This document shows positions 31,689 to 63,529 of a DNA stretch of 64,000 bases, one piece after another (position 1 is the first letter of the stretch; the number at the start of each line of letters is the position of its first letter). The DNA is taken from the NCBI RefSeq assembly GCF_006345805.1, contig NC_042998.1, positions 194,122,001 to 194,186,000 on the forward strand. Direction: 5' to 3'. The stretch comes from Octopus sinensis (taxonomy: Eukaryota). Position numbers and translations under genes: made by a program. The notes under the pieces are model-generated. The model saw only the letters and a program-made list of their open reading frames with translations, ran no database searches and was not told where the DNA came from.

Positions 31689-31903
31689 GATACATACAGA
31701 TGTACATGTGTGCGTGTGTGTTTGCATGCTGAAATTTATCTTCTGTATCCGCTACACGAATTTGACATGTCTGGGACAACCTGCAATGGTTATTCATGAG
31801 CACTGTTCGTGTTCCCTCACTTTTAAAATAAACGTAATGTTCTTACATAAATTTTTATTTTCCATTTCTCAAGGGAAAACCCCTCTTTTAGCTCAACGGA
31901 ATT

Positions 31904-32216
31904 ATGGCAGAAGACGAAGTAATTAACAACAGTGACAGCAACCATCATACTCCCCCACCGCCACCTCCACCACCACCACCGCTGCCTCCACCGCCACCAC
32001 CACCACCACCGCCTCTGTCATCTGAAGCTGTCCGTCATTCATTCAGTATTCCTACCGGAAACCTTTCATCGTTCCATGGTGCCAATGCCAACCCGTTTTT
32101 ATCGTCCATGAGCGGCATAACCTCCACACATCCTTCCTTACAGAACGCCGCTTTCCTCAACGCAGGTCTCTCTCGTCAGATATGTCTCTCAGCAGAACTG
32201 CTTCCTCGTTTTATCG
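31904..32216 (+). CDS. eyg: Eyegone-like Pax gene, first visible coding exon (polyproline N-terminus, degenerate PAI remnant)
   Basis: ORF MAEDEV...P10-L-P10...GLSRQICLSAELLPRFI ends G|GTAAGT (phase 1 donor) and joins the 42928 exon in frame. The gene name is from family resemblance only. Confidence 0.78.
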
Positions 32217-32229
32217 GTAAGTATATTTA

Positions 32230-32628
32230 TACAGATGTACTTGCATAGCGAGTGACTTGATCTGAGATCATGTGCTGGAACGGAAACAATTGCAGCGTGG
32301 AAGGTGTTTATAAGCCATTTAAGAAACACACAAAAACCGTTAGATTCACTTCAACATATAAATTTAATTCGTCAAAATATTTTCGTCGCTTTGAGACCGC
32401 GACCTGTTCACTGACAAAGCTGTTCACTGACAAAGCTGTTCACTGACAAAGCTGTTCACTGACAAAGCTGTTCACTGACAAATGCAGCATGAAGCTTTGT
32501 CAGTGAACAGGTCGCGGTCCCAAAGCGACGAAAATATTTTGACAAATTAAATTTACATGTTGAAATGAATCTAACGGTTTTGTGTGTTTCTTAAATGGCT
32601 TATAAACACCTTCCACGCTGCAATTGTT
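32230..32628. mobile_element. Foldback element (~134-bp arms) with five central 16-bp tandem repeats and two G3-C8 hammerhead-like motifs
   Basis: Arms 32285-32419 and 32495-32628. (CTGTTCACTGACAAAG)x5 at 32404-32482. A deleted sister copy lies at 39613-39853. Confidence 0.85.
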
Positions 32629-33032
32629 ATATTTATACAGACAAACATTAACATATATGATGTAATGGGCGTCATAGAGTATGAGAATCAATAAATTATG
32701 TGATGAAGAAAATACATCAACACTAGCTTAACGATTGTGTTTTGTGATAATGATGTCTCTGAGCAAATTTCTTCAGATATTATTTTTCTAAATTGCTATT
32801 TTAGTTATTCTCTCATCGCTATTTCGTTAAATCTGATGAAGTCATCGCTACGCTAAGGAGGTTTAAGATGACCGAAACATGCTGAACTTGTCTCCCGTAC
32901 CTGCCGATATGATTAAAATAATATTGGTCATTGAGGGATGTTCCTGCCATGACAAGCACGTCTTTCTATGTTTTTAGGCTAGTATATCTAAAAGTACTTT
33001 ATTCAGCCTTCTTTAAGACGATAGGGTATGGT

Positions 33033-34720
33033 TTTTGTTTGGCATCCTTTCTGTCTCGGCTGTTATATTTTATTTCCTGTTACATTTCTTGCTGTGGCTG
33101 TGTAGTCCTATCCTGGACAAACACTCCCTCTGGCAGGTACTGCAAATGTAGCGAAGACTGTTCCTGGCTGGTTGTAGTGCCATGGTCTCTTGTTTATGTC
33201 TCTTCCTTTCTTTCCATTTCTCCTCTCTCTTTCTGTCACTCCTCTGTATACCCTCTTTTACTGTACGTCGCCATTCTCCAGGTTGCCGGCGACTGCCTCC
33301 CAACCGCTAATGTTGATGTTGCAGGCCTTCATATCCCTTTTGCAAACATCCTTGTAACGTAAGATCGGTCTACCCACAGACCTAGTACCCCTAGCAAGCT
33401 CTCCGTAGAGTATGTCCTTGGGGATTCTGCCATCTTTCATACGGCTAACATGCCCAAGCCATCTCATACGTCTTTGTGTGAGGAGTGCAAACATGCTTGG
33501 TATTCCTGCTTGCCTGAGGACATCTTTGTTGGGGATATGATTCTGCCATTTGATGTGGAGGATTTTTCGGAGGCAGCGCAGGTGAAAGATGTTTAGGCGA
33601 CGCTCTTGGCGTGTGTATAGCGTCCAGGTCTCGCTTCCATACAGTAGAGTGCTGAGTACACATGCCTGGTAGATCTTCATTTTTGTGGTCTTGGTCAGCT
33701 TATTGTTGTCCCAAGCCCGTTTGGAGAGTTGGGCCATCGCAGCAGCTGCCTTGCCAATGCGTATATTGAGCTCAGCGTCAAGGGATAGGTTGTAGGTGAC
33801 GGTAGAGCCCAGATAGGTAAACTTCTCCACCTCTTGTAATCTGTGGTCTCCAATATGTATGTTTGGGATGTCCGATGTAGCCTGGCCCATGATGTTGGTC
33901 TTCTTAAGGCTGATAGCTAAGCCAAAGTCGTTACATGCTTGCTCAAAACAGTTAATGAGCCTTTGGAGGGCTTCTTCTGTGTGTGTTACCAGAGCGGCAT
34001 CATCAAAATAACATCTCCTGATCAGGACGTTTCTGATTTTGGTCTTGGCACGCAAGCGCGAGAGATTGAACAGTTTCCCGTCACTTCTACTGTGCAGAAA
34101 CACTCCATCATCTGATGTCTGAAAGGCATGTGACAGCAAGAGTGAGAAGAAGATGCCAAACAATGTAGGAGCGAGGACACAGCCTTGCTTTACCCCGTTT
34201 TTTATTTGGAAGGCGGCTGATGTTGAACCGTTGTGCTGTATGGTGCCTTGCATGTCATCATGGAAAGACTGATGATCCTCAGCTTTGGTGGAACCGATTT
34301 TTTGGAGCAGGAGGAAGAGGCCTGTTCTGCTTACCGAGTCAAAAGCCTTTGTTAGATCAATGAAGGCCATATATAATGGCATTTTCTGCTCTCTGGACTT
34401 CTCCTGAAGTTGGCGTATGGAGAATATCATATCGATAGTTGATCTGACGATTGGGCTACCCAGGACTTTCTTATCTATAGCCCAGGCCTGCGCAAAACTG
34501 GAGAGGACACTTCAGTGCTGCTGTAAAAAGCTGCAGAAACAACACGGGAGGTAACAGTTACGAGTGATAAGTCCATTCAGATTGGCGTAAAATATGGACG
34601 CTACGGGTTACCTCTGCCGGTGGGAGGGACTTCCGTGTCCTATTGGTTAGCTACTGCCCACCTCAAGCTGGGCAGCCCCCAGTTAATAAGGGTATGGTAG
34701 GAGAGACATTTTTGTTGATT
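33033..34720 (-). mobile_element. RTE-clade LINE, RT and C-terminal zinc finger, lacking the endonuclease
   Basis: ORF 33258-34430 has MAFIDLTKAFDSV, GVKQGCVLAPTLF, FTYLGS, LLYGSETW and RWLGHV. C-terminal CSTCQRECLSRIGLHSHSKKC. 3' GAGACAGAAAGGATGCC. The FADD motif is corrupted. Confidence 0.93.
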
Positions 34721-35029
34721 TTTTAGCTGGTCGAGTGACCACAGAAATGCACCTTTCTTTCTTCGCACTTATTAAAGAAGTTTCGTTTAGCCTTCATCTT
34801 CCATATTTCTGTAGAATCAAAATATCCATTTATATACTTATATGTGTGTATATGTGTGTTATGTACGCATATATATATATGTATGTTCGTATGAAACCAG
34901 CAAGTACACAAACATGTCATCAAGGTACTATCTCCCACGGTGACATTATGTCATTGATAAGAATAATTCACAATGTTATCCGCAGAAAAGATTGCCCTTG
35001 AATAAATATGGACAATATTTCTGCTACAG

Positions 35030-35240
35030 AATACATACATGCATGCATACATACATACATACATACATACATACATACATACATACATACATACATACAA
35101 ACATACATACATACATACATACATACATGCATACATACATACATACATACATACATACATACATACATACATACATGCATACATACATACATACATACAT
35201 ACATACATACATACATACATGCATACATACATACATATCG
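35030..35240. repeat. (TACA)n microsatellite
   Basis: Directly visible. Source of the YIHT/MYVC ORFs. Confidence 0.97.
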
Positions 35241-35384
35241 AGTATGGCCATTGCACGAAGCTTAATCAATGTTGTTATCGTGCAATGCCTGTGCAAGAAG
35301 ATTTTTTTTAAAGTGAAGAAAGGCTGTGCACTGAGTCAATCCCACTCACTAAGCAACAACAGCCATAATCCGAAAAGAAGAACA

Positions 35385-35775
35385 AGTCAACATCATCGGT
35401 AACCACTGAGCCGCAGGTTTTATCTCGGAGTTATCCCAGTTACCTGAGTTACCTTCTCCTACAAGGATGCCCTAACAAAGGCTAGGAGTCCTTCACTCCC
35501 AATGGTTTAACCGCGCGATCGGGTATTCAGTCCGATTATTTCTATGTCCCCGCGCATGATACAGCCTTAAGACATTTATTGGATGGCCGTTGACTCTCAA
35601 GAGTTCCTCCGCCCTTTGACGGGTTTTGTTTTTCATCCCGCAGGGTGTCCATCCAATAAATACCCTCCTCACCAAGCAAGCTTGGCGGGGTTGCCGGTTT
35701 AGTCGCCGACGACCCGACCATGCAACAGGTTGTACTGGTTACATGTTACCAGTAGCACTCGAAAGTGACCTGACA
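35385..35775 (-). mobile_element. Dispersed repeat homologous to 19740-20118 (probable RTE 5' UTR derivative)
   Basis: Shared blocks as listed for 19740. Abuts (TACA)n. Confidence 0.6.
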
Positions 35776-35878
35776 TAACATACATACATACATACATACA
35801 TACATACATACATACACACACACACATACATACATACATACATACATACATACATACATACATACATACATACATACA

Positions 35879-35909
<31 letters not shown>

Positions 35910-36294
35910 CAGTTGAAGTAATACTGGCGCAATATCCCCATCAAAACATGTACCAAGTACAAAAGTGGCTAAGCCGACAGCTTTTGTGGGATACAAAAAA
36001 GTTAAGTACAGTTATAGCAGTTAGTTGCTCCACAAATGTGAACACCACTTCCAAAATCACCAAGGGGAATATGTTTGGATAACTGCTTCGAAATGTGCAA
36101 CTTCTGCACCCTTGTTACAAAGAACTAGACTTTTCAAGTAAAGAATGAGACCGGCTGACGCGAATTTTACTGATACAATCTGTACATAGAACAGTAAAAA
36201 TATGCGTAGCAATTACCATTGTTGTTATACAAACTCCTACGATGTAACTATTGATTCTTTGCTAAAACCCAACTCCTTCATTCTAGAAGGTATG

Positions 36295-36545
36295 CAGTCT
36301 GTCCGTCGATGCAACGAAGACCATCAAGTCATCCTGGTGTGGGCTTGTTTTGTGAGTCAGTAGATGGCTAGTGAGGCCAATCTGCGCCCGAAAGAGTCTT
36401 TGACAGCGTGGACAGGACATGGTAGCGCTTGCTACAGGGTTGTTAGCTCTGTTCTTCCTGGTTTGTCTGCGGTCTTCTGCAGCAGCGATCCCATTGGTCT
36501 CGTATGTGTTGGTACCCTTGTGGTGCTAACACATGCGAGACCAAT
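36295..36545 (-). mobile_element. RTE LINE 3'-terminal fragment
   Basis: Reverse strand encodes AAAEDRRQTRKNR...MSCPRCQRLFRAQIGLTSHLLTH, the RTE C-terminal C2H2-like finger. Confidence 0.8.
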
Positions 36546-36570
36546 AAATATAAAAAGAAAAAGGCACGCA

Positions 36571-36621
<51 letters not shown>

Positions 36622-38479
36622 TGTGTGTGTGTGTGCATGTGTGTGTGTGTGTATTCCAAATATCTAGTTTTTGACAAAAGGAAAATGGAGACGTCAGCAC
36701 ATGCTGCCGAATATGGGATTTATCTGAGTTCCCTTGTCTTGTGACACAAGTTTCATGGCACGACCATGATCGGGTGGGAACTCATTCGAATATCGTAAGA
36801 GTGTGAAACTCTAGTCTCGTTCACGCACGCACGCACACACAAACACACATGCATAAATACACAAACACTAGCGCATTTTTGTTTTAAAAAATCAAAAGGA
36901 AATAACATTGTGAGCAAATGATACAACACAATATTATGAGTGTGTGTGTGTGTGTGTGTGCCTGCGCGCGCATGTTTGTATTGTGTGCATATTTAGATAT
37001 ATATGTATTTGCATATACGTATGTAGGTGCGTGCGTATTTCTGTGTATGTGTATACGTGTATATGTGCATGTGTGTATATGAGAATGTGGTGTGTTTATG
37101 TATGCATTCACACTAAATATTGTGATGAAAATAAAAGTGTTATGTATTTCCATTAACGTGGTCTATGAGAATCTGAATTATTAAGTCGACTGCCATCTGG
37201 AGAGAATGGAATAAATCTCCTTGCCACTGAAATCTGGAATCCAAAGCACTAAAAACATTTTAAAGACAACAGACAAACAGGTGCCAGGCTTGATCAGCGA
37301 TCAATTTTCATTGGGCTTGAAAAGTAATATAATAGAAAGTACAATAGACACAAGAACACAATAGGCTTTCCTGTGTCAAAGCCATCATCTACTCAGACTG
37401 CGCATTGGTTGCTTGTCTAGCTAATGTTACGATTATTGTCTATCATTATTACCTACACAATGCTTCATTCCTTTTCAATATCTTCAGTTCCATCTTTACT
37501 TTATTTAATTGAGTGTTGCCCTCTCCCACAACCTGTTACCTATTAATGTCAGTCAGGCTCTATTCTAGAACCACTTTATTTCCTTGAAGAGAAAAGAGAG
37601 AGTAAAAGAAGAAGCTGTGTCTATTAATGTGGCCATCAAGAATATTGCACTGTCTTGAGAAATAACTCATAAAACAGCTGCACTATTGTCAGACGTTCTT
37701 CAATTTTAAGCAAACAAACAAATAAATAATTCACAGAAATAGATTTGGAATATTTTCCCCCTTCCGTATGATTTTAACAATTACTTCTTTTCGTCTTCCT
37801 CGAGTCTTATTATTTTCTATGTTTCGTATTCTTTTGGTGAGATACATTAAAAAGTATTTGTCCTTCCACTAAATAAATGATCGCAAACGTATCAGTAACA
37901 AAGTGTTAGCTAATTTTTGTTAATATTTGATTGGCTCAGCAAAAATTATTTACTGAAGTTCATAAATTCGACAGACTAGTTGAAATTCGAAGGCAGAATC
38001 AAGTTTCACATTAAATTCCATTGCTCTACTATTTTTTGCTACGGACTTCCCTCTATAAATATTATAAAATTTTCTTGAATTGACTTGCGTTTTACATTTT
38101 TGGTGCAAACCCCTAAAAGCATCCAGGTTTTTGGATCTGGCCCAGTATTAAAAAGGTTGGGAGTTTCCAAACTAAATGCTCATCTTCGGAACCAATGGCG
38201 ATGTACACAATATGTTCAGAATTTATCGAAGCCTCCCTTGATTTCAGTGATATCAATAGGACAACAGGTATATTTTTGTGTCAAGAAAGTCATACTGTTA
38301 GTAAAAAAGCCAGACTTTCATAGAAAATTATCACCTTCACCATTTTACAAAAATGGTATAAACTGATACCTTTTCGTGGGTAGAGTCAAGATTTCGTCCA
38401 TGAGGAGGGGTCGTAATTATCAAAATGAACTTATTAGCCCTCTGATTTGCGAAAAATACAAAAATAAAATAAACGTTAG

Positions 38480-38775
38480 GCACAGGAGTGGATGTGTGGT
38501 TAAGAAGCTTGCCTCCCGATCATGTGGTTTTGAGTTCAGTCCCACTGTGCAGCACCTTGTGCAAGTATCTTCTACTGTGGCCCTTGGCCGACCTTATGAG
38601 TGGATCTGGTAAACGGAAAGTTCATCGTATACGCGCGCGTGTGCGTGCGTGCGTGTGTGTATGCGCGTGTGTGCATGTGTCTTTGTGTTTGTTCTACTTG
38701 ACAAGCTTTGTTGGTTTGCTTACGACCCCGTAACTTAGCCGCTCGGCAAAAGATGCCAATAGAATAAGTATCATG
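38480..38775 (+). mobile_element. Diverged, 3'-truncated SINE family A
   Basis: GGCACAGGAGTGGATGTGTGGTTAAG head and CCCCGTAACTTAGCCGCTCGGCAAAAGA body. Confidence 0.8.
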
Positions 38776-38784
38776 CAACAAAAG

Positions 38785-38821
<37 letters not shown>

Positions 38822-38884
38822 CTTTTACTTTGTTATCTCCCCTACTTCTTCGCTCTCCTGTTTGACCCTTCTGTCCGGCTGTCG

Positions 38885-39083
38885 CCATGATAGATCGTTG
38901 GCCACTACACACATTTTTTTTCTCTCCTTGTTTCTCTCCTTGTTTTTTTCTGTGTCCCTTTCTGTAGAAGAACGTTGGCTCGAAACGTAGAAGACATTTT
39001 CAGTTCCCGAACGTTATACTAATACATATGTTTGTTTTCTACACCACCTGTCTTCGTCTTTTGTTTTTTTTTTCGTGAATTCT

Positions 39084-39090
<7 letters not shown>
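38885..39090 (+). mobile_element. Short pseudo-LTR-like repeat with A6U hammerhead-like motif (38958-38993), ending in (TA)n
   Basis: Homologous to 48300-48475. Motif cttt CTGTAGA a GAAC-gttg-GCTC GAAA CG TA gaag. Confidence 0.65.
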
Positions 39091-39152
<62 letters not shown>

Positions 39153-39612
39153 TCCCTTATATTCTTGTATCTAATTCATTTTAAAAAATCAATCATAAAA
39201 GTCAATCATAATTATTATAATATAAAACATTAAGATGATTAGTAAAGTAATTATATTTGTATTTAGTTATTGATTCATAATTTATTCTACATAACATTAT
39301 ATACTTAAGTGTGTGGGAGAGAGAACACATATATGTATGCGGGTTTACGTTACATGCATTTAAGATTACTACGTAGATATATTAAGTGTATCACGTCATC
39401 AAGATTAGTGTTATCGATAGATTTATAATATTTGCATCTAAAATAAGATGTATTATATTATCTGATTAATTAATAAAGATCAATACTTAATATTATTATT
39501 AAATTGATATTTAAATATTATGTTACATAATATATAGTATATATTATTTATATTTATATTATTTTTATCCTATGTTTGTAAATTAAGTTATACTTATTAT
39601 ATTATGTTATGG

Positions 39613-39853
39613 AGATGTACTTGCATAGCAAGTGAACTGATCTGAGATCGTGTGCTGAACCAAAAACAATTGCAGCGTGGAAGATGTTTATAAGCCATTT
39701 AAAAACACACAAAAACTGCATCTGATGCAGCACGGAATTTCGTCTCAAAGCGACGAAAATATTTTGGCAAATCAAATTTAAATGTTGGAGTGAATCTAAC
39801 GGTTTTTGTGCGTCTTTAAATGGCTTATAAACACCTTCCACGCTGCAATTGTA
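39613..39853. mobile_element. Internally deleted copy of the 32230 foldback family
   Basis: Shares GATGTACTTGCATAGC...ACAATTGCAGCGTGGAAG.TGTTTATAAGCC and its inverted copy. The ribozyme 5' core is deleted. Confidence 0.85.
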
Positions 39854-40540
39854 TCATATTATATTTATATCATTAATGTTTATTTCTATTTTTATTTATT
39901 AATTTTTATTAAATTTTCTAAAATATACTTAGGTTAGTTCCAACAAGTTAAAATATTCACTCTTCCTGAGTTAATTAATTTGTGTTTAGATATTATATAT
40001 TTCATGCTTATATGTCTAATGTTAGTTTTGTTATTTATTTATATATTTATTTATTTATTTATTTATTCATTAAATTTTCTAAAAGCATACTTCGAGTAGT
40101 GACAACAAACTAAAATATTTTCTTTCGTAGAGTTAATCTATGTTTAGATTTTATTTGAAAAATTTCTTCTGCGCATAATTGACATTTCCTGTCTGAACTT
40201 TGATAAGTTCTGGCATGATTTACAACCTCTCAATTAATTCTATAATTTTTCCCATTATCTTTTGACATCCATATAAATTTGCTGAGATTAGTATTATTGA
40301 TTTTATGCTTATTTCTAAAACAAATCTCATGGTTCGCAATTCTCCGTTTCAAGTGAGTTTCAGTTGGACTTATGTAATAAATTCAACTACACTCCTATAT
40401 ACCTGGTTGTCTTGTTTACAGTTATTATTAAGTTTACAATTTTCTTTAATCCTGCAATCACAATTTTTATTAATATCTTTATACTATTCTTACTTTTATC
40501 ATTTCTTTTATTTTGATTTTCATCATCATCATCATCATCA

Positions 40541-40588
<48 letters not shown>

Positions 40589-40614
40589 TATTACTATTAT
40601 TATTATTATTATTA

Positions 40615-40645
<31 letters not shown>

Positions 40646-41307
40646 TGGATTAGAAAAGGAATCAATGTGGGTTATTTCCCTTCTATTATTATAAATTGCC
40701 TTATCATTTTTACTTAAATTTAAATTGGTATAAAAAATATCTATTTTTTAAATTTTTAACTGAGGATATAATTTTAAAAGATTCTTTGACCGACTTTTAT
40801 AACTTTAGAATTAATTTCTATATACTTATTATCCATGTGTTTATAATTATGCATACTGTTAGACACCTAACCAATTTAAGAAAAGATTTCATAAATATTG
40901 AATCACATTTTATATCTAATGAGTATGTGTTTACATCCTATGACTGTCATACAACTGTATGATTCATAATATTCAATTGTAATATATAAAAAATGTTTAC
41001 GTATTTTCCATTATTAAGCAACAGTGGTTGGTATTCATTAACTCCATTATAGATACAAAACCATTTAGTTTAATAACAGATAATAATATGCTATCAATTA
41101 ACAGTTTATCACAGTAAGCAGTATAACCTAACTGAAAATATGATCGACAACTGTAGAATATAATTTTCGGTTAACAGAAAAAAGCTCGTTCTCAAAGCAA
41201 AAAAGATGGCGGGGAATCTAAATTTGCTGTACAATGTTAGTTAATTTTATAAACCACTGGTCTACCTATCATGTTATCTACACGCGCGCACACACACACA
41301 CACACAC

Positions 41308-41386
<79 letters not shown>

Positions 41387-41399
41387 AATTGTTTGCGTA

Positions 41400-41900
41400 A
41401 TAAGATTAAAAACCAAGGCTGTATAGATATTAGAGCATTTAGGTCTTACAGCTGTTTCTAGGATATATATTAATTAGATCCCTTTATCGGAGACGGTGTG
41501 AGAGGATGGTTAAGTCATAGTTAGTTTAGATGTGATACAAAATAGAGAGTGAGGTGGAGGAAAGAAAATAGATGCAATATATGTATGGGTATTGAAGTTG
41601 TAAATCCATTTTTTAGGCATAACGGTATATATGCAATATTCCAATATCCTTTGAGTAAAGTCCAAAAGTCCAACAGAGTTTTAAATGAGTCCTTCCATAT
41701 ATAGATATCGAGAGGTTTTGAATATTTTGTGGGGCAAACATAGAATTGCTCATTACACGATTGTATTAAATGTATGTCGAATCTAATATATAAATATGTT
41801 ATATGTAAGGCAAAGGGCATTTGATTATGTGAACAAGATTTCGGTAAACGAACGACTGACTGACTACGCACGTCAGCAAATTTCTTAACGGTCACCTAAT
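41400..41900 (-). mobile_element. PLE 3' end (GIY-YIG C-terminus, 3' UTR, decayed hammerhead at 41443-41494)
   Basis: Reverse strand gives ...YIRFDIHLIQS.NEQFYVCP, then gtct CCGATAA a GGGAT...ATCCT a GAAA cagctg TA agac. Confidence 0.7.
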
Positions 41901-42064
41901 GTGCGCTGTCAACCAAAAGACTTGAAAACTTGGTCAGATATGTAACCCTCTATATCACACACATAGGCGCATGCATACATAGCCACATGGATACATACAC
42001 ACATACATATATGTATGTATGTATATGTGTGCGTATATATATATACATATATATATATACATGC

Positions 42065-42121
<57 letters not shown>

Positions 42122-42538
42122 TATATGTATCTATGTATATATGTGTGTGTGTGTATGCATGTATGTATATATGTATGTATGAATGCATGTAAGCACACAC
42201 ATATAGACATACACACACATGTATATTTATATGTATATGCATGTATATTAATAAACGGACTGGAAACCACTTTAGACTAAAGTGCCTATGTATGTGTGCG
42301 TGCATGTGCGCGCATGTGTGTGTGTGCGCGTGTGTTGTGTGTGTGTCTGTGTGTGTAGAACGTAGAACGGCACTAGCAGTAATATTTTGTCTTAGAGAAA
42401 CATCTCAAAGAGTCTGACGTGTTAAAAACACAGGGCTTTGCTGTGAACGCTCGTGGATTGTCAGATACAATGTTTCGACCTAACGGGGTACCTCAGTTAA
42501 AGTACCTAATTCAACTGAATCGCATTTGTGTGTGCGTG

Positions 42539-42832
42539 TGAGGAGGGAGGGAGGGAGGAGAGATGGGGGAAGGAGAGAGGGAGGAGGGAGGGAAGGAGAG
42601 AGGGAGGGAGGGATAGAAGGAGAGAGGGGAGGAGGGAGGGAAGGAGAGAGGGAGGGAGGGATAGAAGGAGAGAGGGAGGGAAGAAGAGAGGGAGGGAAGG
42701 AGAGAGGGAGGGAAGGAGAGAGAGAGGGGGGAAGGAGGGAGGGAAAGAGAGAGGGAAAGAGAGAGGGAGGGAGGTATAGAAGGAGAGAGGGAGGGAAGGA
42801 GAGAAGGAGAGAAGGAGGGAAGAAGGGAGAGT
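42539..42832. repeat. Polypurine (GGA/GA) tract with internal duplicated units
   Basis: About 290 bp almost purely G/A on the + strand, ending ~95 bp before the exon acceptor. Confidence 0.95.
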
Positions 42833-42927
42833 TTATACCTATACGTATCCATGTATTTGTGCATACAAACACATAAATATCATATGTATTTATATTTATT
42901 TTATTTATTTATTTATTTATTTTACAG

Positions 42928-43089
42928 GCGGATTTTGCGACCCAGCCATATTTTCCGGTCGATATGGAACAATTGGTGGCAGCAAGCCTAAAGTGGCCAC
43001 ACCAAATGTTGTGGCAAAAATCGAGGAATATAAATTAGAAAATCCTTCTATTTTCGCTTGGGAAATAAGAGAAAAGCTTATGGCTGATG
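42928..43089 (+). CDS. eyg: Eyegone-like Pax gene, paired-domain linker and RED subdomain exon (162 bp, phase 1-1)
   Basis: TTTTACAG acceptor and G|GTAAGC donor. Encodes [54 protein letters not shown], an unmistakable paired-domain segment. Confidence 0.92.
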
Positions 43090-43864
43090 GTAAGCTATCT
43101 TTATCTGGTAATAATTGCTTTCCTATGATTAATGTATAAGTTGCGTGAGCTTATAAAGCGTGCTTCGGTTTTGGGAAGCAAGTTCTTGAAAAATTTTTTA
43201 AAAACTGTTTTCAAATTAGACATATGTAGCCTCCTCAAACCGCATTTTAAATTTTGGTGTATTCCTGTCCTTACGAAGTCCTACTATATCTAATCAAAAG
43301 GTAATTAATCTTTTGGCGTCTATATTTCGGTATAGTCTAAAGAAGTCTGCGGTGTAAGGATATTCCGTGTTTTCCAGCCTAATCACTGTGATTCGACCCG
43401 AGAATTACTTAAAAGGTAAACGTGCCTGCTTGATTCTCAATTGCTTTTACGAATAGGAATTCAGTTGGTCGAATGACTGAACGTCATCATCGAGACCGAC
43501 GATGTATCCAACTCTTACATTCACACGCGCACGCACGCAAACCCCCCCCCCCACACAAATATTCATACATACTTGCATGCATGGACAGGGTTCGCAAAAG
43601 CAGACCGGAGAAAACTAATTAGAAGACTGCAGACACAAGCCATGGATGGAACTGTCAAAATATGTAAGCCTTTCCAAAAGTTTAGCATATTAGTACATAT
43701 AGACATGCAACACATAAAATAAAAAAACTCCATTAAGGGGATCTAAAAATCTGTTCTTACTCTATTGGCAAGAAATCTAGAAATAATATTATATAACATA
43801 CATAACACATACCTATATACATCCATGCATCCATGCATACATGTGGAATATTTATGAACATACC

Positions 43865-44195
43865 CACATAATGCTGAGAGCCCCTTCGGTCATGACTGAC
43901 CATGCGATTGCACCTAGAAAGTTACCCTCCCATGCACAAGTCCGGGCAAGGTTGCTTATGGAGGACCAGCAGTCGCCCAAGCATACCGGCCTCCCATCTC
44001 CACGCCACCAGTGTTATCCAAGGGAAAGGCCAATATGGCTTTGCACCAGTGACATCGCAACTCATTTCTACAGCTGAGTGAACTAGAGCAACGTGAAATA
44101 AAGTGTCTTGCTCAAGAACACAACACGCAGCCCGGTCCGGGATTCGAACTCACAATCTTACGATCGTAAACTCGACGCTCTAACCACTGAGCCAT
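43865..44195 (-). mobile_element. tRNA-derived SINE, family D (CORE-like central block)
   Basis: GCTCAGTGGTTAGAGCG A-box, GTTCGAATCC B-box, then TTGAGCAAGACACTTTATTTCACGTTGCTCTAGTTCACTCAGCTGTAGAAATGAG. Confidence 0.8.
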
Positions 44196-44424
44196 GTATG
44201 TATATATATGTACATATATGTACGTTTATGAATTTGTGTTGCAAGTCTCTTGATGTGAAACCGTGTGTTGAAACATGTTATATTTCGTGATGGTCACAGG
44301 CGAATGGCGGGTGCGAACCAAAGATGGTGCAGAGATGCTGATAAAATGCCGTCTGGGAATTCTGGGCGAGCTAACTGCCGAGTTTGACCTGAAGCTGAGT
44401 GTGGTTTTTGTGCCCTCAGAGAAG

Positions 44425-44640
44425 AATGTGTTTGTGTATCTGTGTTTATCCCCCACCATCGCTTGACAACCTATGTTAGTGTGTTTATGTCCCCGTAAGT
44501 TAGCTGTTCGGCAAAAGAGATCAATAAAATAAGTACTAGGCTTACAAAGAATAAGTCTTGGGGTCGATTTGTTCGACTAAAGGCGGTGCTCCAACATGGC
44601 CGCAGTCAAATGACTGAAACAAGTAAAAGAGTTAAAGAGT
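44425..44640 (+). mobile_element. 3' half of SINE family A
   Basis: CCCCCACCATCGCTTGACAACC...CAGTCAAATGACTGAAACAAGTAAAAGAGT. Confidence 0.88.
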
Positions 44641-44744
44641 ATATATATATTGTATGTGTGTGTGTGTGTGTGGTTCGTGTGTGTGTGTATGTGTTTGTAT
44701 GTGTTTGTGTGTGTGTGTACATGCAAACAAATTTACATATATAT

Positions 44745-45235
44745 ATATTGTATGTATGTATGCATGAATGTATGTATGTATGTATGCATGAATGTATGTA
44801 TGTATGTATGTATGTATGTATGTATGTATGTATGAATGTATGTATGTATGCATGAATGTATGTATGAATGTATGTATGTGTGTATGTATGTATGTATGTA
44901 TGTATGTATGTATGTATGAATGAATGAATGTATGTATGTATGTATGTATGTATGAATGTATGTATGAATGTATGTATGTATGTATGTATGTATGTATGTA
45001 TGTATGTATGAATGAATGTATGTATGTATGTATGTATGTATGTATGTATGTATGTATGCATGAATGTATGTATGTATGTATGTATGTATGTATGAATGTA
45101 TGTATGCATGAATGTATATATGTATGTATGCATGTATGTATGTATGCATGAATGTATGTATGTATGTATGTACGTATGTATGTATGTTTGTATGTATGTA
45201 TGCATGAATGTATGTATGTACGTATGTTTGTTTGT
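44745..45235. repeat. (TATG)n/(TGAA)n compound microsatellite
   Basis: Directly visible. Explains the 232- and 303-aa low-complexity ORFs. Confidence 0.97.
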
Positions 45236-45456
45236 TTGTTTGTGTGTATGTGTAGACAAGCAGATAGACATCTCTGCATTAGATAATTTTTGTTTTCGTG
45301 CCATAGTTTCAAAATCTTGATCAACAACTTCAACCTAACAAGCTTAGAGAAATCGACTACAGCGAGATTGGGAGAGAGAAAAGGAAAGATTGAAAGTGAA
45401 GAGAGAGAAAGTGAGTGAGTGATTGAGTGAATGAGTGAATGGGACAAGAGAGAGAG

Positions 45457-45514
<58 letters not shown>

Positions 45515-46399
45515 ATACTCAGACTGACAGACAGAGAATACAAAAACCAAAAGCTTTGATTTTGAACAATAAGTTTGTCATTATTGCCAAAACATTCACA
45601 CTATCACAGTAACACAGATTACCGAACTAAACTCCTAGCCTGCCTACTGCTTCATGTCGTACTCTACTTCCTTTCATACATTTAACAATAAAACGTTTTG
45701 TTACCTCCATTTTGAATGCCCCTATTATACAAAGGTGTCACCAAAAGTTAGCTTCTACTTCCGGTTCAAATGAAGCTACCATCACGACCTAATATAAAAG
45801 CTGGTCATATACTTCACCTTACTCTATATACTCTGTGCACAAATTAACGGTATTCTTTTCGTCTAAGTTTGCACAGGGAAATATCTAGTTATTTGTTTCA
45901 CTTCTGTTTATCTTTTTATTTATTTATTTATTTTCTATTTTATTGCATTTATCTTTTATTTATTAATTTATTAATTTTCTTTCTTTCTTTTTATTCATTT
46001 GCGTTTTTGTCCACCTCACCACATCAAATAATATAACTTTATCTCTCTATTTTCTCCTTGATAACTAATGTCATATTGTGAATGAGGACACACAATAGTT
46101 AAATAGTGATAGATTTTGCACACTTTCCTTATTGAAGTCTGGCAGATTGAAGTGTGACTATACCTCGAGAAGTGGGTAGATTTTATTGAGGCTTAGACCC
46201 AAATCTGACCTACTTGAACAGAGATCTACTATGAAAGAGTTCTACGTGCGGCCATCCTTTCTTTGAGTAGATGAGAGACTACAATTTTAAAGAGTCCATT
46301 TGTAAAAACAGTAGAGAGTGCTTTGAAGGAATTTGAGAGTTATTTTTTGTAGGTCGAAGGAACACACCGAGGCTCCCTCTTAATTTCGTATCAATGAGA

Positions 46400-46960
46400 G
46401 TATCGCCATCTCTATGTCACGCTGGTGAGACCCATATTGGAGTACGGGATTCAAGCCTCTTCTCCTTATCTCCTCAAAGACATACATAATCTCGAGAGAG
46501 TCCAGAAGCTGGCTACCCGCATGGTTCTTGGTCTCAAGCATTTGTCTCATGAAGAAAGGCTGAAGACGCTCGACCTTTATTCTCTCGAAAAACGACGACG
46601 CCGTGCTGATCTCATTCTCGCTCACATCATAAGCGGGAAGTGTAACCTCTCGAAAGAGCTGTTCTTCACTCCTGCTCCAGAGCGTGGGCTGCGGGGTGAC
46701 TCCGAAAAGCTCTATCTACTACGATTTCATCTCAATCGAAGGGGAGGGGCATTCCCCGTCCGGGTTGCGGATCCGTGGAATAAGCTGCCGGACGAGATAG
46801 TGAAGATGCCGACGACCGCTCGGTTCAAAGTCTCTCTTGACCGGAAATGGCCTGAACTCTTTGTATGACCACCCTCCCTGTACATAACTCCCTGTCCCCC
46901 TACATGGCCTTGCTTTTGCTTTTTGAGCCAATAAAAATTGAATTGTATTAAACTGAATCT
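46400..46960 (+). mobile_element. 5'-truncated CR1-clade LINE, same family as 3072-3957
   Basis: ORF 46425-46868 is nearly identical in peptide to the C-terminus of ORF 3157-3849. Same 3' UTR and GAATT tail. Confidence 0.93.
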
Positions 46961-47406
46961 CTCTAAATGTAACCCCTCGTAAACTGAGTTCCTATTGGTA
47001 TATTCTCCGATTGTCTTCTCGTAGCATATATTTTGAAAATGAACATATGTGTGCGTATGTATATTGTGTCTATATGTCAATAGCTGCTTTAATGAGTATC
47101 TGTGTGTGGCTGTGTTTGTGTGCGCGTGTGCGTGAGAAATGACCCAGAGTGTTTTAAATGTACAGACCTTGCAAATCAGCCGTTGATCTTGTAAATTTTA
47201 CTTGAAACCGCAAAGAACCGTATCTATTTCAAAATGAACGTGACGTCAACCATAATCATTTTCACCATACTCGCTTTCTTCATACATTATGAAACTCTGT
47301 GTGTGTGTGAGTGTGTGTGTGTGTGTGTGTGTGGTGTGTGTGTGTGTGTGTGTTGTGTGCGTTGTGTGTGTAGGTGTGTGCATATATGTATGAATACATA
47401 TAAGAT

Positions 47407-47698
47407 TGTTCCTTCTCGAGCCACGTCTGGCTCATAAGGGCCGGTTTCTCGGTTTCCTTGGCGTACAGGTTCCCCACCAGGACGGGACGCCGATACGTCG
47501 CAGGTGAACTGCAAGAAGCAGGAGGAAAGAGTGAGAGAAAGTTGTGGCGAAAGAGTCAGCAGAAATTCATCATTACCTTCTGTCGGAGCCGCGTGGAGCT
47601 TATGTGTTTCGCTCATAAACACACATCGTCTGAGATTCGAACCCGCGATCCCTCGATCGCGAGTCCGCTGCTCTAACCACTAGGCCATGTGCCTCCAC
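47407..47698 (-). mobile_element. SINE family C, tail type 3 (V-domain-like), with 14-bp TSD
   Basis: Homologous to 21470. TSD AATACATATAAGAT at 47393-47406 and 47699-47712. Confidence 0.88.
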
Positions 47699-48158
47699 AA
47701 TACATATAAGATACATGTATAGGTGTATGTTTGTGAGTGTGTATGCATATATGTATGTATGTTTGTATAACCATGATATTGTTGGATTGTAGTTCTTAGC
47801 CAGGATGAGCTTTATATGTTAAACCGTAGCTAACAGCTGTACCTTGATCTATCAACCATGAGGCACTTTCGATACTGCAGCTGTTAAGTGCTTTATATAT
47901 TTGTCAGAAAGATTTTAAACTAGGCTTGAATGAAAACTAAAATGATACCAAACACAAAATTATCAAATATTTCTTAGACGGTGAACGGTAATAATAGCAC
48001 GGTAAAAATGACACAGGTAAAAATGGCACAGATGCAATAAGCTTACTGGCACAACAAGCTTACTGAAATATACACTATTAGTAAAAGAAGTAGAATAAAG
48101 TTTTTACGTATGTATGTATATGTTTATATGACGCTATGTATATAGTCACCATCTATAC

Positions 48159-48219
<61 letters not shown>

Positions 48220-48221
<2 letters not shown>

Positions 48222-48266
48222 GGGGAGAATTCACAAAAAAATACAAAATGTGTGTAGTGGCTAGCG

Positions 48267-48298
<32 letters not shown>

Positions 48299-48470
48299 CG
48301 CTAGCCACTACACACATTTTTTCTCTCCTTGTTTCTTTCTGTGTTCCTTTCTGTGGAAGAGCGTAGGCTCGAAAAGTAAAAGACTTATTCTATTATTGAG
48401 CGTTATACTAATACATCTGTTTGTTTTCTACACCACCTGTCTTCGTCTTTTGTATTTTTTGTGAATTCTC

Positions 48471-48475
<5 letters not shown>
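48220..48475. mobile_element. Rearranged pseudo-LTR-like element with nested inverted repeats and an A6U hammerhead-like motif (48347-48382)
   Basis: Outer IR TAGGGGAGAATTCACAAAAAA.TACAAAA, inner IR AATGTGTGTAGTGGCTAGCGATATA around (TA)n. Motif cttt CTGTGGA a GAGC-gtag-GCTC GAAA AG TA aaag. Confidence 0.7.
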
Positions 48476-48542
<67 letters not shown>

Positions 48543-48659
48543 GCGCATATACACGCGTATATGGAATTGCACTCACCAATGTATAAACACCTAAACAAGT
48601 ATGTACATGTTTATATGACTTACTTGGAAATGGATGCGTGGCGCCCAATCAAATAATAT

Positions 48660-49770
48660 ATATATATTATGAGTTGTGGAAGATATTTATTGATGAAAGT
48701 TGCCTCTTTATTCATTGTTTGCTGTACTGAGGTGTTCTATGAATATTGATAGGAGGGGAAAATTCGGAAATTAGGATTAAGGTTCCTAGCACACCTTTCT
48801 ATGTGTTCACTGACCTGTAAATGTCTGTATTGTGGGTGGCGGATTTATTTGTTGTCGAGAGTGGTTCTTCGATGGAGTGATATTCCTATTTGGCCAATAT
48901 AATGATTACCACACCCCAAGCATGTAATGGCATAGATTAGGTTTTCCGAGGCACAAGTGAAATTTGATTTAATCTTAGATATTTCACCTTGTTTAAAGTG
49001 GAACTCTGAACCCTCCAAAAGGTGGGGGCATTACCACAGTTAGGCCGACCACATTTTTTCACTTTTGGTTCCGTTGTTATTGGATATAGCCTTGTGCTGG
49101 TTAATATTTTTTTCCAATGATTTCGGTTGCATTTTGCTTTTGATAATTTTGTGTGAGCTTAAAATTTTGTTCATTGTTTTATCTCCAGTAAGAATGGGAA
49201 GATTTTGAATGATAATGTTGAAGGCTTCATTGTTTCTAGGGTTATGTGTGGAGATGAATGGGAGTATTTTTAAGTCTGGTGTAGTATTTCGGTTGACTTC
49301 CCTTAATGTTCGTATATCTATTTCCTTAACTCGTTTAATGCCATCATTTATTAATGATATTGGGTAATGTCTTTTAATTAGTATTGATCTGAGTTCAAAG
49401 AGTCTTCGTTCCCGAGTATTGGTGTCTGAAACTATGGTACAGATTCTTTTCGCTAGATTATAAGGTATATTAATTTTTATGTGTTTGGGGTGGCATGAGT
49501 TGAATAATAGGTATTGTTTAGAATTTGTGGGTCTATAGAAGATGTCTGTTTCGATATGGTTATTGACTATTTTAATTAGGATGTCAAGAAAAGGGAGTTG
49601 TTAACTGTTGTGCTCCATGGTGAATTGTATGTTGCTATTAATATTGTTAAGCATATTTTGAAATCGAGGAGTTTGTCCATGCTATCTTTCCAAAGTATAA
49701 AGCAATCGTCCAAATACCACTTCCAGTTCTCCTTTAAATAGCAATGAAATGAGGTGCCATATTTTTGTAG
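48660..49770 (-). mobile_element. Penelope-like element fragment: RT C-terminal part plus GIY-YIG
   Basis: WKWYLDDCFILW, QLPFLDILI, SCHPKHIKINIPYNLAKRICTIVSD, FTCASENLIYAITCLGCGNHYIGQ. Related to 6050-6960. Confidence 0.92.
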
Positions 49771-50409
49771 TGATGATTGGTATATCAATCAAGGAAACCG
49801 AACGAAAACAAACATGGAGGTTCCTCCTCTTTCTCTTTTCTCTCTCTCTCGTTGCTCACGCGTGACCATCGTCTATCTTTCTTTTCCACACGTGATCATC
49901 TTTCTATTCCTTCAGGACTGTCCTAAGGACTGGAGTATTATATCTCTCTCTTCTATCTTTTCCCTTTTCAAAGAAAATATTTCTCCAGCGTTCGCTATTT
50001 TACCCTCGTTCTGGTCTAACGACCCTCCATGTTTGTTTTTGTTCGGTTTCCTTGTATGTCTCCACTGTCCTGCTTTTGTTCCCAAAAATCCAAAATTTTA
50101 TTTTGGTACTTATGGGAGCAACTGTCTTCGAAGTCTCATATTGTCGTTCAGTGCTTGAAATGAGGAGTAGAGACAACCGGCAACTGATGAAGGGTCGTTC
50201 TTTGTGTTATTTGTCCTGTTTTCCATTTGTTTCTCTCGTTGTTTGCGTATTGAACTCATTTGTTTGCTTGCGTTTTTCATGTTGTTTACTGTTGGTGACG
50301 TCCTGTACCCATATATGCATATGTGTGTGTATGTATATATATATATATAAAATATATATATTTTTAAACTGTCATATACTATTTTTAAACTGTCATCAAA
50401 CCCAAGCCC

Positions 50410-53400: not shown

Positions 53401-53545
53401 AGCTGCATCGAACTCTCTCATGCACCAAATAGCAGTTGCTAGAAAGCCTCCATGAAGTGAAACCAAGTAGCAACACCAAATGGCGGTGCCCCAGCATGGC
53501 CACAGCTCATAAGCTGAAACTAGAATCAATCAATCAATCAATCAT
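50410..53545 (+). mobile_element. CR1-clade LINE with near-complete ORF2 (APE endonuclease and RT), frameshifted; (AATC)n tail
   Basis: NIRGL, LTETHL, RTDR..GGVAMY, YRPP, MGDFNLP, PTR..NTLDL and SDH in the endonuclease. QHGFRPGRSCLTQLL, SGVPQGTVLGPLLF and YADDTK in the RT. Confidence 0.95.
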
Positions 53546-53624
53546 ATATATAATAAAATATATATATATATATATATCTATATATTATATATATATTATA
53601 TATATAAATAAATATATATATATA

Positions 53625-53658
<34 letters not shown>

Positions 53659-53795
53659 ATATATATATATATCTATATATATATATATATATATATATAT
53701 CTATATATATATATATATATATAAATAAATATATATATATATACATATTTATTTATATTATATATATATAATATATATATATATATAATATATAT

Positions 53796-53847
<52 letters not shown>

Positions 53848-53850
53848 ATA

Positions 53851-53881
<31 letters not shown>

Positions 53882-53884
53882 CAT

Positions 53885-53955
<71 letters not shown>

Positions 53956-54054
53956 TATTATATATATATATATATAATATATAGATATATATATATATAT
54001 ACACACACACCACATATATATATATATATATATATATGTATATTATATACACAT

Positions 54055-54090
<36 letters not shown>

Positions 54091-54102
54091 GTGTATATAT
54101 AT

Positions 54103-54133
<31 letters not shown>

Positions 54134-54500
54134 CACTGCGTGGTGCCTAGGACTCCAAACTTGCCATCAAGATGTAGGACAAGATTCTGTGATAGCCTGG
54201 GCTTCCGAGGCCCACAGCTCTTCAATATCCTCCCGAAGAACCTGAGAGACCTGCATGGGGTGGATACAGATGTCTTTAAAATGGAGCTGGATCTCTTCCT
54301 GTCAGGTGTCCCAGATGAACCAACTTCACGGCAGGAGGGGCAGATGAGGGCAGCTGCATCGAACTCTCTCATGCACCAAATAGCAGTTGCTAGAAAGCCT
54401 CCATGAAGTGAAACCAAGTAGCAACACCAAATGGCGGTGCCCCAGCATGGCCACAGCTCATAAGCTGAAACTAGAATCAATCAATCAATCAATCAATCAA
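54134..54500 (+). mobile_element. Near-identical second copy of the last ~365 bp of the upstream LINE
   Basis: Repeats 53183-53545 with about two substitutions, separated from it by a ~590-bp (TA)n tract. Confidence 0.92.
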
Positions 54501-54657
54501 TTATATATTTATACTTATACATATTTACATATATTTTTATACATATTTATATCTCTTTATATATTTTTAATACAACAATTATTTTTTATACGTGTATATC
54601 TTTCTGAGGAGTTTTTATATTGATTTCCTAATATTAATAATAATTAGTATTAATATA

Positions 54658-54750
<93 letters not shown>

Positions 54751-54878
54751 TATATTATATATATATATATATAACAACACAAATTGAGGAACGGCCATAA
54801 TAGGCCGTTCGACCCACTAGAAACAGCAGCCAGGGCTTCAACCGCAAATAGTAGTAATTCCGTAAACAGAGGAAAATG

Positions 54879-54911
<33 letters not shown>

Positions 54912-54953
54912 TATATATATATGTGTATATTATATATATGTATATAATATTTA

Positions 54954-55006
<53 letters not shown>

Positions 55007-62845: not shown

Positions 62846-63253
62846 TTAGAGGGTTGAGTTTCATAAGAATTAACTTTGATACGTTGTTTACTGAAGGAAT
62901 AAAGATGAGAGCCTAGATTTAATACAAAGAGACTTTTCCTTGTTCTATTCTTTACCGAAGGCATGAAAAGGAAAAAAAAATAAAATAAAAATAAAAAATT
63001 AGAGTGGGAGTGAGTGTAATAGCTTTGATAACAAAGAATGATAGGAAACTGGGGGTGAACATCGATTTTGAGTAAACTATAAAGTTATATGCTGTGTCAG
63101 CGACATTAGCTGACACATGGGACATAAAAGAGGAGAGATGACAACATAATGGCATTCAGATAGAAACGTGTGTCGCTCCTACAACATAACTTTTACAAGA
63201 AATCAATTGATAACTCTCTTAGGAATAAACACATTTAAACAGAGCAGCTACCG

Positions 63254-63284
<31 letters not shown>

Positions 63285-63479: not shown

Positions 63480-63493
63480 GTTTGCGTGTGTGT

Positions 63494-63529
<36 letters not shown>

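Follow-up and report, generated by a model that had tools for sequence, protein, structure and literature searches.

What kind of Pax gene occupies the middle of this stretch of the Octopus sinensis genome, and what has become of the PAI subdomain of its paired domain? The stretch (hereafter, the window) comprises 64,000 nt, positions 194,122,001 to 194,186,000 of contig NC_042998.1. A first-pass annotation, made from the letters alone, had read positions 31904-43089 as an eyegone-like Pax gene with an eroded PAI subdomain, and the public gene model at the same place is named Pax-6. From the gene structure, relatives, introns and constraint described below, we consider it highly probable that window 31904-43089 carries the first two coding exons of a single-copy Octopus sinensis orthologue of eyegone (Pax-eyg; eyg below). 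Eyg is an accepted bilaterian Pax subfamily that was lost in vertebrates.

Two coding exons joined across a 10.7-kb intron

Reading and translating the window places the coding start at the ATG at 31904, 12 nt past an in-frame TAG. The parts of the gene are as follows; those beyond position 64000 are given in window-equivalent coordinates.

31904..32216 (+): coding exon 1, 313 nt, amino acids (aa) 1-105, ending in phase 1; carries the start codon, a proline-rich tract and the PAI remnant
31952..32014 (+): low-complexity tract rich in proline (P17-P37, broken by L27)
32150..32216 (+): PAI-subdomain remnant, aa 83-105 (AFLNAGLSRQICLSAELLPRFIG), corresponding to canonical paired-domain helices 2-3 (DISRQLRVSHGCVSKILG)
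32217..42927 (+): intron 1, 10,711 nt, phase 1, GTAAGT ... TTTTACAG
42928..43089 (+): coding exon 2, 162 nt, covering aa 105-159, with phase 1 on both sides, donor ATG/GTAAGC
43090..64000 (+): first 20.9 kb of intron 2, which goes on to window-equivalent 68538 and contains fragments of long interspersed nuclear elements (LINEs) and a satellite
68539-68895 (L002 38636-38992): coding exon 3, GVCTQATLPSVSSINRILRNKAAERAA..., the rest of the RED subdomain
70269-70453: coding exon 4, the first two-thirds of the homeobox
73469-73846: coding exon 5, from the exon map of the RefSeq model

The exon 1 donor (TCG/GTAAGT, after 32216) leaves one codon base over, i.e. phase 1, and the acceptor of intron 1 follows a (TTTA)n-rich tract that leads to TTTTACAG/G, with its AG at 42926-42927. 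Splicing the two exons gives a 158-residue peptide, exactly as the first-pass annotation had quoted it, so that its proposed junction stands in coordinates, signals and product. Exon 2 encodes a 14-residue linker, the minor-groove motif IGGSKPKV and helices 1 and 2 of RED, and is clearly a paired-domain exon (tblastn with PAX6, E 1.5e-14; six-frame scan with a paired-domain hidden Markov model (HMM), E 1.9e-20). On the spliced product, the Pfam PAX profile matched with E 5.9e-18, aligning residues 89-159 to profile positions 39-107 of 125. Neither tblastn with PAX6 nor the six-frame HMM scan found an exon for the C-terminal part of RED or for the homeobox within the 64-kb window.

The same gene is already modelled in RefSeq. 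XP_029653925.1 (P0121 below; 464 aa) is labelled "paired box protein Pax-6" [Octopus sinensis]; its aa 1-105 are identical to exon 1 and its first 158 residues to the spliced product. Its locus (GCA_006345805.1, CM016860.1:194,151,904-194,197,846) and the window share 34,097 nt (window 29904-64000) with 0 mismatches, and RefSeq therefore uses exactly the 32216/42928 junction. The P0121 gene map has five coding exons with GT-AG borders across about 42 kb. Three of them lie past the window end, by 4.5-10 kb, where the first-pass annotation had expected the GVCTQATLPSVSSINRILRNKAAERAA... and homeobox exons.

The junction recurs in two further octopod models. The orthologue in Argonauta hians, independently annotated and labelled 'Pax-6-like', has the same exon 1-exon 2 junction and the same five-exon structure, with an intron 1 of 4.9 kb; its exon 1 aligns to the octopus exon 1 with 73% nucleotide identity, while the flanking intron is not alignable. 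An older octopod model found by protein search (P0001, UPI00071D13BE; 189 aa) is 94% identical to the spliced product and also has this junction. The proline tract varies in length among octopods, being shorter and substituted both in P0001 and in the Argonauta protein (P0122). Residues 155-189 of P0001 form an unrelated 35-residue tail without a homeodomain; we ruled out that this tail is encoded in the window, its matches there hitting only a 99-bp satellite. P0001 is probably a truncated or mis-predicted gene model.

The gene belongs to the Eyegone class

To which Pax class does the protein belong? In a protein search, the 120 best-matching relatives of P0121 are all of eyg architecture, and those named eyegone among them include proteins from Saccoglossus, Stomoxys, Haematobia, Cotesia, Pycnogonum ('Eyg') and Mizuhopecten (UniRef). 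With phmmer, P0121 scored 228-251 bits against four eyegone proteins, 185 against Trichoplax PaxB and 166 against human PAX6. A motif that extends RED helix 3, NRILRN(R/K)(A/V)AER(A/V)A, is present in the octopus protein and in 110 of the 120 best matches, and is absent from the PAX1/9, 2/5/8, 3/7 and 4/6 references checked; this signature was derived here from the matches and not from the literature. A neighbour-joining tree of RED plus homeodomain recovered an eyg clade (bootstrap 72) and an octopus-Argonauta pair (bootstrap 100), with PAX6, Ey, PAX4, PaxB and PAX3/7 outside, so the protein joins eyg and no other Pax class.

RED is intact, with IGGSKPKV and helices 1-2 on exon 2 and the third helix (PSVSSINRILRN) on exon 3, outside the window. 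The homeodomain of P0121, likewise encoded outside the window, is complete and of prd class with S at residue 50 (RRNRTTF...VQVWFSNRRAKWRR), and finds PDB matches at E 1e-23. The octapeptide [HY]S[IV]..[IL]LG was not found in P0121. A linker motif, (Y/F/L)(Y/C)DP...R..(S/T)IGGSKPKV, is common to the proteins of octopus, scallop, Solemya, Haliotis, Aplysia and a chiton.

Intron positions carry the same signal. A phase-1 intron follows ...RFIG in octopus and Argonauta, ...NILA in scallop, ...SKLFD in a crinoid and ...SKMLA in Saccoglossus, where the PAI is complete; in the eyg genes of octopus, Argonauta, scallop, crinoid and acorn worm this intron comes after the residue that aligns with ...KILG. 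The next exon in the five genes is 156-162 nt long and ends in phase 1 after ...L(I/M/L)(A/S)(D/E/S)G. Further downstream, a phase-0 homeobox intron after ...SEARVQ is common to the eyg genes of octopus, Argonauta, Mizuhopecten, Anneissia and Saccoglossus. Similarity ranking, family motif, tree and intron positions thus bear out the first-pass reading of a molluscan eyg orthologue, in the Eyg family and outside Pax4/6.

We also considered that the gene might be a true Pax-6 (Pax4/6 class), or a Pax6 duplicate specific to cephalopods whose paired domain has been damaged. It carries that name in RefSeq and UniRef, its homeodomain has S50 as in Pax6, and the PDB Pax6 paired domain is among its top structural relatives. 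However, a Pax4/6 protein has a complete Pax6-type paired domain and clusters with Pax6/Ey, whereas here half of the PAI is missing and the protein stands apart from PAX6, Ey and PAX4, with eyg, in both trees. The 166 bits to PAX6 compare with 228-251 to eyegone proteins, the eyg-specific NRILRNKAAERAA stands where Pax6 has NRVLRNLASEKQQ, and the intron positions match eyg genes of four other phyla or classes. The name itself carries little weight, since automated annotation is no reliable guide to the naming of clear eyg orthologues (Pax-3-B, Pax-7-like, unc-4 homolog), and a separate canonical cephalopod Pax6 exists (PMC3942700; PMC5333810 lists Ocbimv22011111m.p). A Pax6 identity is therefore largely refuted already, and we regard it as extremely unlikely. 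Judged from its sequence, XP_029653925.1 is an Eyegone-class Pax protein and its name 'Pax-6' a misnomer. The gene model was already public in RefSeq under that wrong name; what is new is the eyg identity of an unlabelled member of the family.

Two side observations concern the family as a whole. Automated names in NCBI and UniRef for clear eyg orthologues are inconsistent, including Pax-6-like, Pax-3-B, Pax-7-like, 'segmentation protein paired-like', 'homeobox protein unc-4 homolog', 'phosphatidylinositol 3-kinase 2-like' and, for Nymphon, 'Pax-8'. In addition, a C-terminal ...GS.HSAF.P motif (P0121 aa 452-458, outside the window at window-equivalent about 73.8 kb) is retained in eyg proteins ranging from octopus to insect and hemichordate. 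In a 36-sequence alignment (A1), F456 does not vary and S454/A455 hardly do, and 45 of 121 proteins have 'SAF' within their last 60 residues.

A remnant of PAI at the end of exon 1

Exon 1 alone gave no PAX match with either Pfam or the paired-domain HMM. We also scored it against a position-specific matrix of PAI helices 2-3, built from non-molluscan eyg and canonical Pax proteins. The last 18 residues before the donor, GLSRQICLSAELLPRFIG, scored 20.6, a value reached by only 2 of the 51,099 stop-free 18-mers of the window in six frames, one of them being GLSRQICLSAELLPRFIG itself, and by 5.5e-5 of shuffles. The other PAI-like 18-mer, at 26347-26294 (-), was set aside as chance, having no donor and lying on the wrong strand; one at 35966-36019 (+) was likewise dismissed, as it sits in an open reading frame (ORF) derived from a microsatellite and has an incompatible splice phase. 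The alignment to canonical PAI with a 2-residue insertion, which the first-pass annotation had proposed, was reproduced by phmmer against Pax-8 (2k27), Pax-5 (1k78) and Pax-6 (6pax): aa 87-181 aligned to Pax-8 and Pax-5 with high posterior probability through the remnant and with that insertion, and the alignments to all three begin at chain residues 39-52.

Orthologues in other animals supply the intermediate states. Among eyg proteins, PAI is eroded in a graded manner, being complete in Saccoglossus, Glandiceps and Acanthaster and running through ELSRQLLVSHGCISKLFD in crinoids, DFARQLLTSQTAVNKILAGRYYETG in spiders, DVSRQPVLETRECLQRMWTRLCDP in Aplysia and NYLERVIGNYYDP in Solemya to GLSRQICLSAELLPRFIGGFCDP in octopus. 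In Saccoglossus, the exon that ends at the matching phase-1 intron encodes the whole PAI, and the 3' end of octopus exon 1 therefore corresponds to the 3' end of an ancestral PAI exon.

It might be argued that the likeness of GLSRQICLSAELLPRFIG to PAI helices 2-3 arose by chance, exon 1 being an unrelated extension and the PAI wholly lost, as in nematode eyg. This would fit the lack of a Pfam or HMM match for exon 1 alone, the modest identity to a Pax2-type sequence (5 of 18 residues, no more) and the unfolded state of the remnant in an AlphaFold2 model. Against it, the score falls at the very position that homology predicts, where a chance hit would have to be one of the 2 in 51,099 window 18-mers, or of the 5.5e-5 of shuffles, that score as high. 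The intermediates in crinoids (ELSRQLLVSHGCISKLFD), Aplysia (DVSRQPVLETRECLQRMWTRLCDP) and Solemya (NYLERVIGNYYDP) also speak against it, as does an intron of the same position and phase as the one after the complete Saccoglossus PAI. We give the chance explanation scarcely any credence. On this comparison of sequences and introns, the 3' end of exon 1 is a true PAI remnant covering helices 2-3.

The rest of the subdomain was sought without success. In all frames of the window, neither tblastn with PAX6 nor the paired-domain HMM found anything resembling helix 1 or the beta-hairpin, and the 17-kb Argonauta locus contains no coding sequence for them. A hidden PAI exon was also rejected, as tblastn with PAX6 and the six-frame HMM scan returned exon 2 only; the Argonauta locus likewise has no additional paired-domain exon. 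A weak paired-domain match at 7671-7832 (E 1.4) proved to be purine-rich low-complexity sequence. The absence of the N-terminal beta-hairpin and helix 1 noted by the first-pass annotation is hence upheld for the whole window, and agrees with a Pfam PAX match that starts at position 39 of 125.

Selective constraint and predicted structure

Is the remnant decaying? The ratio of non-synonymous to synonymous substitution rates (dN/dS) was calculated between the octopus and Argonauta hians coding sequences, a pair in which synonymous sites are saturated (dS above 1). By region, the values were:

aa 1-60, Pro-rich N-terminus: dN/dS 0.25
aa 61-82, exon 1 middle: dN/dS 0.14
aa 83-105, PAI remnant: dN/dS 0.027, with 21 of 23 residues identical in Argonauta
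aa 106-119, linker: dN/dS 0.14
aa 120-181, RED: dN/dS 0.010
aa 182-293, inter-domain region: dN/dS 0.13
aa 294-353, homeodomain: dN/dS 0.012
aa 354-464, C-terminus: dN/dS 0.18

By this measure the PAI remnant is as constrained as RED and the homeodomain and is under strong purifying selection; it has been rewritten and is not decaying. The term 'eroded' in the first-pass annotation is accordingly right in that half of the PAI is lost and the rest rewritten, but does not hold in the sense of decay, given a dN/dS of 0.027. A pseudogene was excluded, as all five exons are intact and the overall dN/dS is 0.11.

An AlphaFold2 run with a 36-sequence eyg alignment folded RED (helices 130-142, 148-157 and 169-199) and the homeodomain with a predicted local distance difference test score (pLDDT) of 94-97. 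The remnant reached a pLDDT of 41-51, with one short helix at 100-104, and was not a confident helix-turn-helix. It has E, L, P and R at what we take to be the canonical recognition-helix positions G48, C49, S51 and K52. Because these positions are changed, and helix 1 and the beta-hairpin are absent, canonical PAI binding to DNA is very unlikely, and the remnant is predicted to be unable to form the canonical PAI helix-turn-helix. Since it is nevertheless strongly constrained in octopods, it probably has another role, for example as a docking or intramolecular regulatory motif.

The start of the transcript and the partner of exon 2

One further feature bears on what lies upstream of exon 1.

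31880..31891 (+): polypyrimidine tract and AG (cccctcttttAG), 12 nt upstream of the ATG; its TAG closes the upstream frame

An acceptor-like signal before the ATG is also present in Argonauta (..CCCAACAG, 5 nt upstream; L001 about 1985-1995) and, in scallop, lies directly before the ATG (ATTTCCAG/ATG; L004 493-500). Such signals before the start codon suggest a non-coding, unannotated first exon further upstream, and 31880-31891 is probably the 3' end of an intron in the 5' untranslated region (UTR). With 12 nt between acceptor and ATG in octopus but 5 nt in Argonauta, the two species are out of phase here, which disfavours a coding continuation upstream and favours a UTR intron.

These signals raise the question of whether exon 1 is the in-vivo partner of exon 2, or whether another upstream exon, perhaps with a fuller PAI, or alternative first exons take its place. 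The transcript probably does start further upstream, as the acceptor-like signals at 31880-31891 imply, and squid Pax6 varies its paired domain by alternative splicing (PMC3942700). However, neither the 31.9 kb upstream nor intron 1 nor the Argonauta locus contains any PAI-like coding sequence, and exon 1 has a consensus donor in phase 1 that matches the phase of exon 2. In addition, the last 23 codons of exon 1, at a dN/dS of 0.027, align to PAI helices 2-3 at the ancestral intron; because this constrained end already supplies helices 2-3, a duplication would be needed for a further PAI exon to exist. The acceptor-to-ATG distances, out of phase at 12 and 5 nt, again point to a UTR intron. We consider a different partner for exon 2 highly unlikely, and keep exon 1 as the first coding exon of the octopus eyg gene.

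Comparison with eyg genes of other animals

Parallel PAI loss in eyg has already been published (PMC5333810; PMC4901127, citing Friedrich and Caravas 2011). In insects, Drosophila Eyegone and Twin of eyegone (Lune) and their relatives resemble the octopus protein in having a truncated or diverged PAI without the N-terminal beta-strands, an intact RED, an S50 prd-class homeodomain, no octapeptide and a NRILRNRAAERAA motif after RED. Unlike octopus, they retain a remnant in which helices 1-3 can still be recognised (LLELSRFGLRGYDLAQHMLTQQGAVSKLLG), and their linker is shortened (TLRPPGLIGG). In the octopus protein, in contrast, helix 1 is gone, LSRQ is kept, helix 3 contains a proline and the linker exceeds the canonical length by 2 residues. 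A repressor and eye-disc growth function is known for insect eyg only.

Eyg of Saccoglossus kowalevskii and other ambulacrarians shares with octopus the intron positions and phases at the PAI/RED boundary, in RED and in the homeobox, and the Saccoglossus protein has the same RED, post-RED motif and homeodomain. Hemichordate eyg differs in having a complete PAI (GLPQLGGMFLNGRPLP...) on a 162-nt exon that follows a short first coding exon, whereas octopus keeps only the last ~20 codons of a PAI exon of this type.

Within molluscs, Navet et al. 2017 re-identified as eyegone A0A0B6VJL1 from Lottia gigantea and K1QWY6 from Crassostrea gigas, proteins formerly called Pax6, and eyg was also noted in Pinctada (PMC5333810). 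These reported molluscan genes belong to the same subfamily as the octopus gene and were likewise mislabelled Pax6; octopods retain LSRQ...RFIG more fully than the bivalve models. The 2017 survey of cephalopod Pax genes reports no cephalopod eyg, its O. bimaculoides table holding Pax2/5/8, Pax6, Pax9, Pax-beta and PoxN only (PMC5333810), and our full-text literature searches (eyegone/eyg with cephalopod/octopus) found no paper describing one.

Vertebrate Pax6(5a) offers a comparison of working principle only: its PAI is disabled and recognition shifts to RED, with the homeodomain (PMC3942700; PMC5333810). There, a 14-residue exon is inserted into an otherwise complete Pax6 PAI, whereas octopus eyg is a separate gene in which half of the PAI is permanently lost.

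Surroundings of the exons

The introns contain repeats, mobile elements and two conserved non-coding stretches.

33258..34430 (-): ORF of 390 aa for a LINE-type reverse transcriptase, inserted into intron 1 in antisense orientation; Pfam RVT_1, E 3.1e-19
36989..37613: non-coding, single-copy stretch in intron 1; 73% identity over 638 nt to Argonauta L001 4409-4996
42541..42829 (+): polypurine (GGAG/GAGA)n tract, 290 nt, about 100 nt upstream of the exon 2 acceptor; (TTTA)n then runs into the acceptor
45556..45875: non-coding, single-copy, ORF-free stretch in intron 2; 71% identity over 332 nt to Argonauta L001 8547-8872
50414-51334 (+): APE-type endonuclease ORF in intron 2; Exo_endo_phos_2, E 4.4e-13; a second ORF, 51331-51813 (+), lies next to it

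The stretches at 36989-37613 and 45556-45875 are colinear with the exons between octopus and Argonauta, and their identity is about that of coding exon 1, though synonymous sites there are saturated. The first is not repeated at full length in the window, where it has only short matches (70-120 nt, 71-75%), and it contains no long ORF. Both are candidate conserved regulatory elements. An 85-nt, 95%-identical octopus/argonaut match at 41311-41393 was considered as an ultraconserved element or microRNA, and discarded as it is only (TA)n.

The ORF pair at 50414-51813 is the 5' part of a LINE in intron 2. Two ORFs in opposite orientations, 3157-3849 (-) and 46425-46868 (+), share a near-identical sequence of ~145 residues (RPILEYGIQASSPYLLKDIH...KWPELF) without a Pfam match, and probably represent the 3' ends of elements that belong to a single retroelement family. 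A 99-bp satellite at 55908-62842 (70 copies, 94% matches) fills 7 kb of intron 2, and a (TG)n tract runs from 63471 to the window end at 64000. Upstream of the gene, a 228-nt unit is repeated 2.6 times at 20580-21176 with 83% identity; short matches to it also lie in the intron of Argonauta (L001 4014-4073), which makes a dispersed repeat probable. Scanning the window with Rfam and for tRNAs gave no hits.

Discussion

How did the octopus gene reach its present form, and what would its protein do? The comparisons above show that the part of an ancestral PAI exon that encoded the beta-hairpin and helix 1 has been lost, with a start codon and a Pro-rich tract in its place. The last 18-23 codons of that exon have been kept as a rewritten helix 2-3 remnant that still ends at the ancestral phase-1 intron. 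By extrapolation from Drosophila, the protein would bind DNA through RED and its S50 prd-class homeodomain, and not through PAI, and would probably act, as Drosophila Eyg does, as a dedicated repressor that controls tissue growth. For Drosophila Eyg, DNA recognition by RED and homeodomain, transcriptional repression and a role in eye or tissue growth are known (Jun et al. 1998 and Yao and Sun 2005, both cited through PMC5333810 and PMC3942700).

Several points count against our assignment, or narrow it. The 90% sequence cluster that contains the exon 1-exon 2 junction has two members, P0001 and XP_029653925.1, both computed gene models, and the evidence for the junction therefore consists of its splice signals, its conservation and gene prediction. 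The eyg clade has a moderate bootstrap (72), and RED alone gives the same topology with a bootstrap of 30. The trees are neighbour-joining on short alignments, with non-eyg references entered by hand; for Pax-5, Pax-6 and Pax-8, the paired domains of these references are consistent with the PDB alignments wherever the two overlap. As for the remnant, its low pLDDT says no more than that it is not a confident helix-turn-helix, and may in part stem from a shallow alignment there. Orthologues from squid, cuttlefish and Nautilus were not found in the searched databases, and the scope 'cephalopod' therefore rests on two octopods. Finally, DNA binding by RED and homeodomain and repressor activity are, for the octopus protein, extrapolated from Drosophila.

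A more far-reaching proposal is that in octopod Eyg the last two PAI helices have become a new constrained module (FLNAGLSRQICLSA[E/D]LLPRFIG, dN/dS 0.03) with a function other than canonical DNA recognition, such as partner docking or tuning of RED/homeodomain binding, and that the gene, under its 'Pax-6' label, is an unstudied member of the network behind the cephalopod camera eye or optic lobe. We think this combination unlikely, and the link to camera-eye development, which had interested the first-pass annotation, is speculation.

The finding follows a known trend in a known gene family and opens no new kind of biology. It extends the known pattern of parallel PAI erosion in eyg to a further lineage, with a clean genomic demonstration through conserved intron position and phase, and the PAI remnant is selectively maintained. 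Its value is also corrective, in that the Octopus sinensis 'Pax-6' and the Argonauta 'Pax-6-like' models are really eyegone. Under the wrong name, counts of Pax6 copies or isoforms in studies of cephalopod eye evolution could mislead, and name-based Pax6 copy counts in invertebrate genomes would come out inflated.

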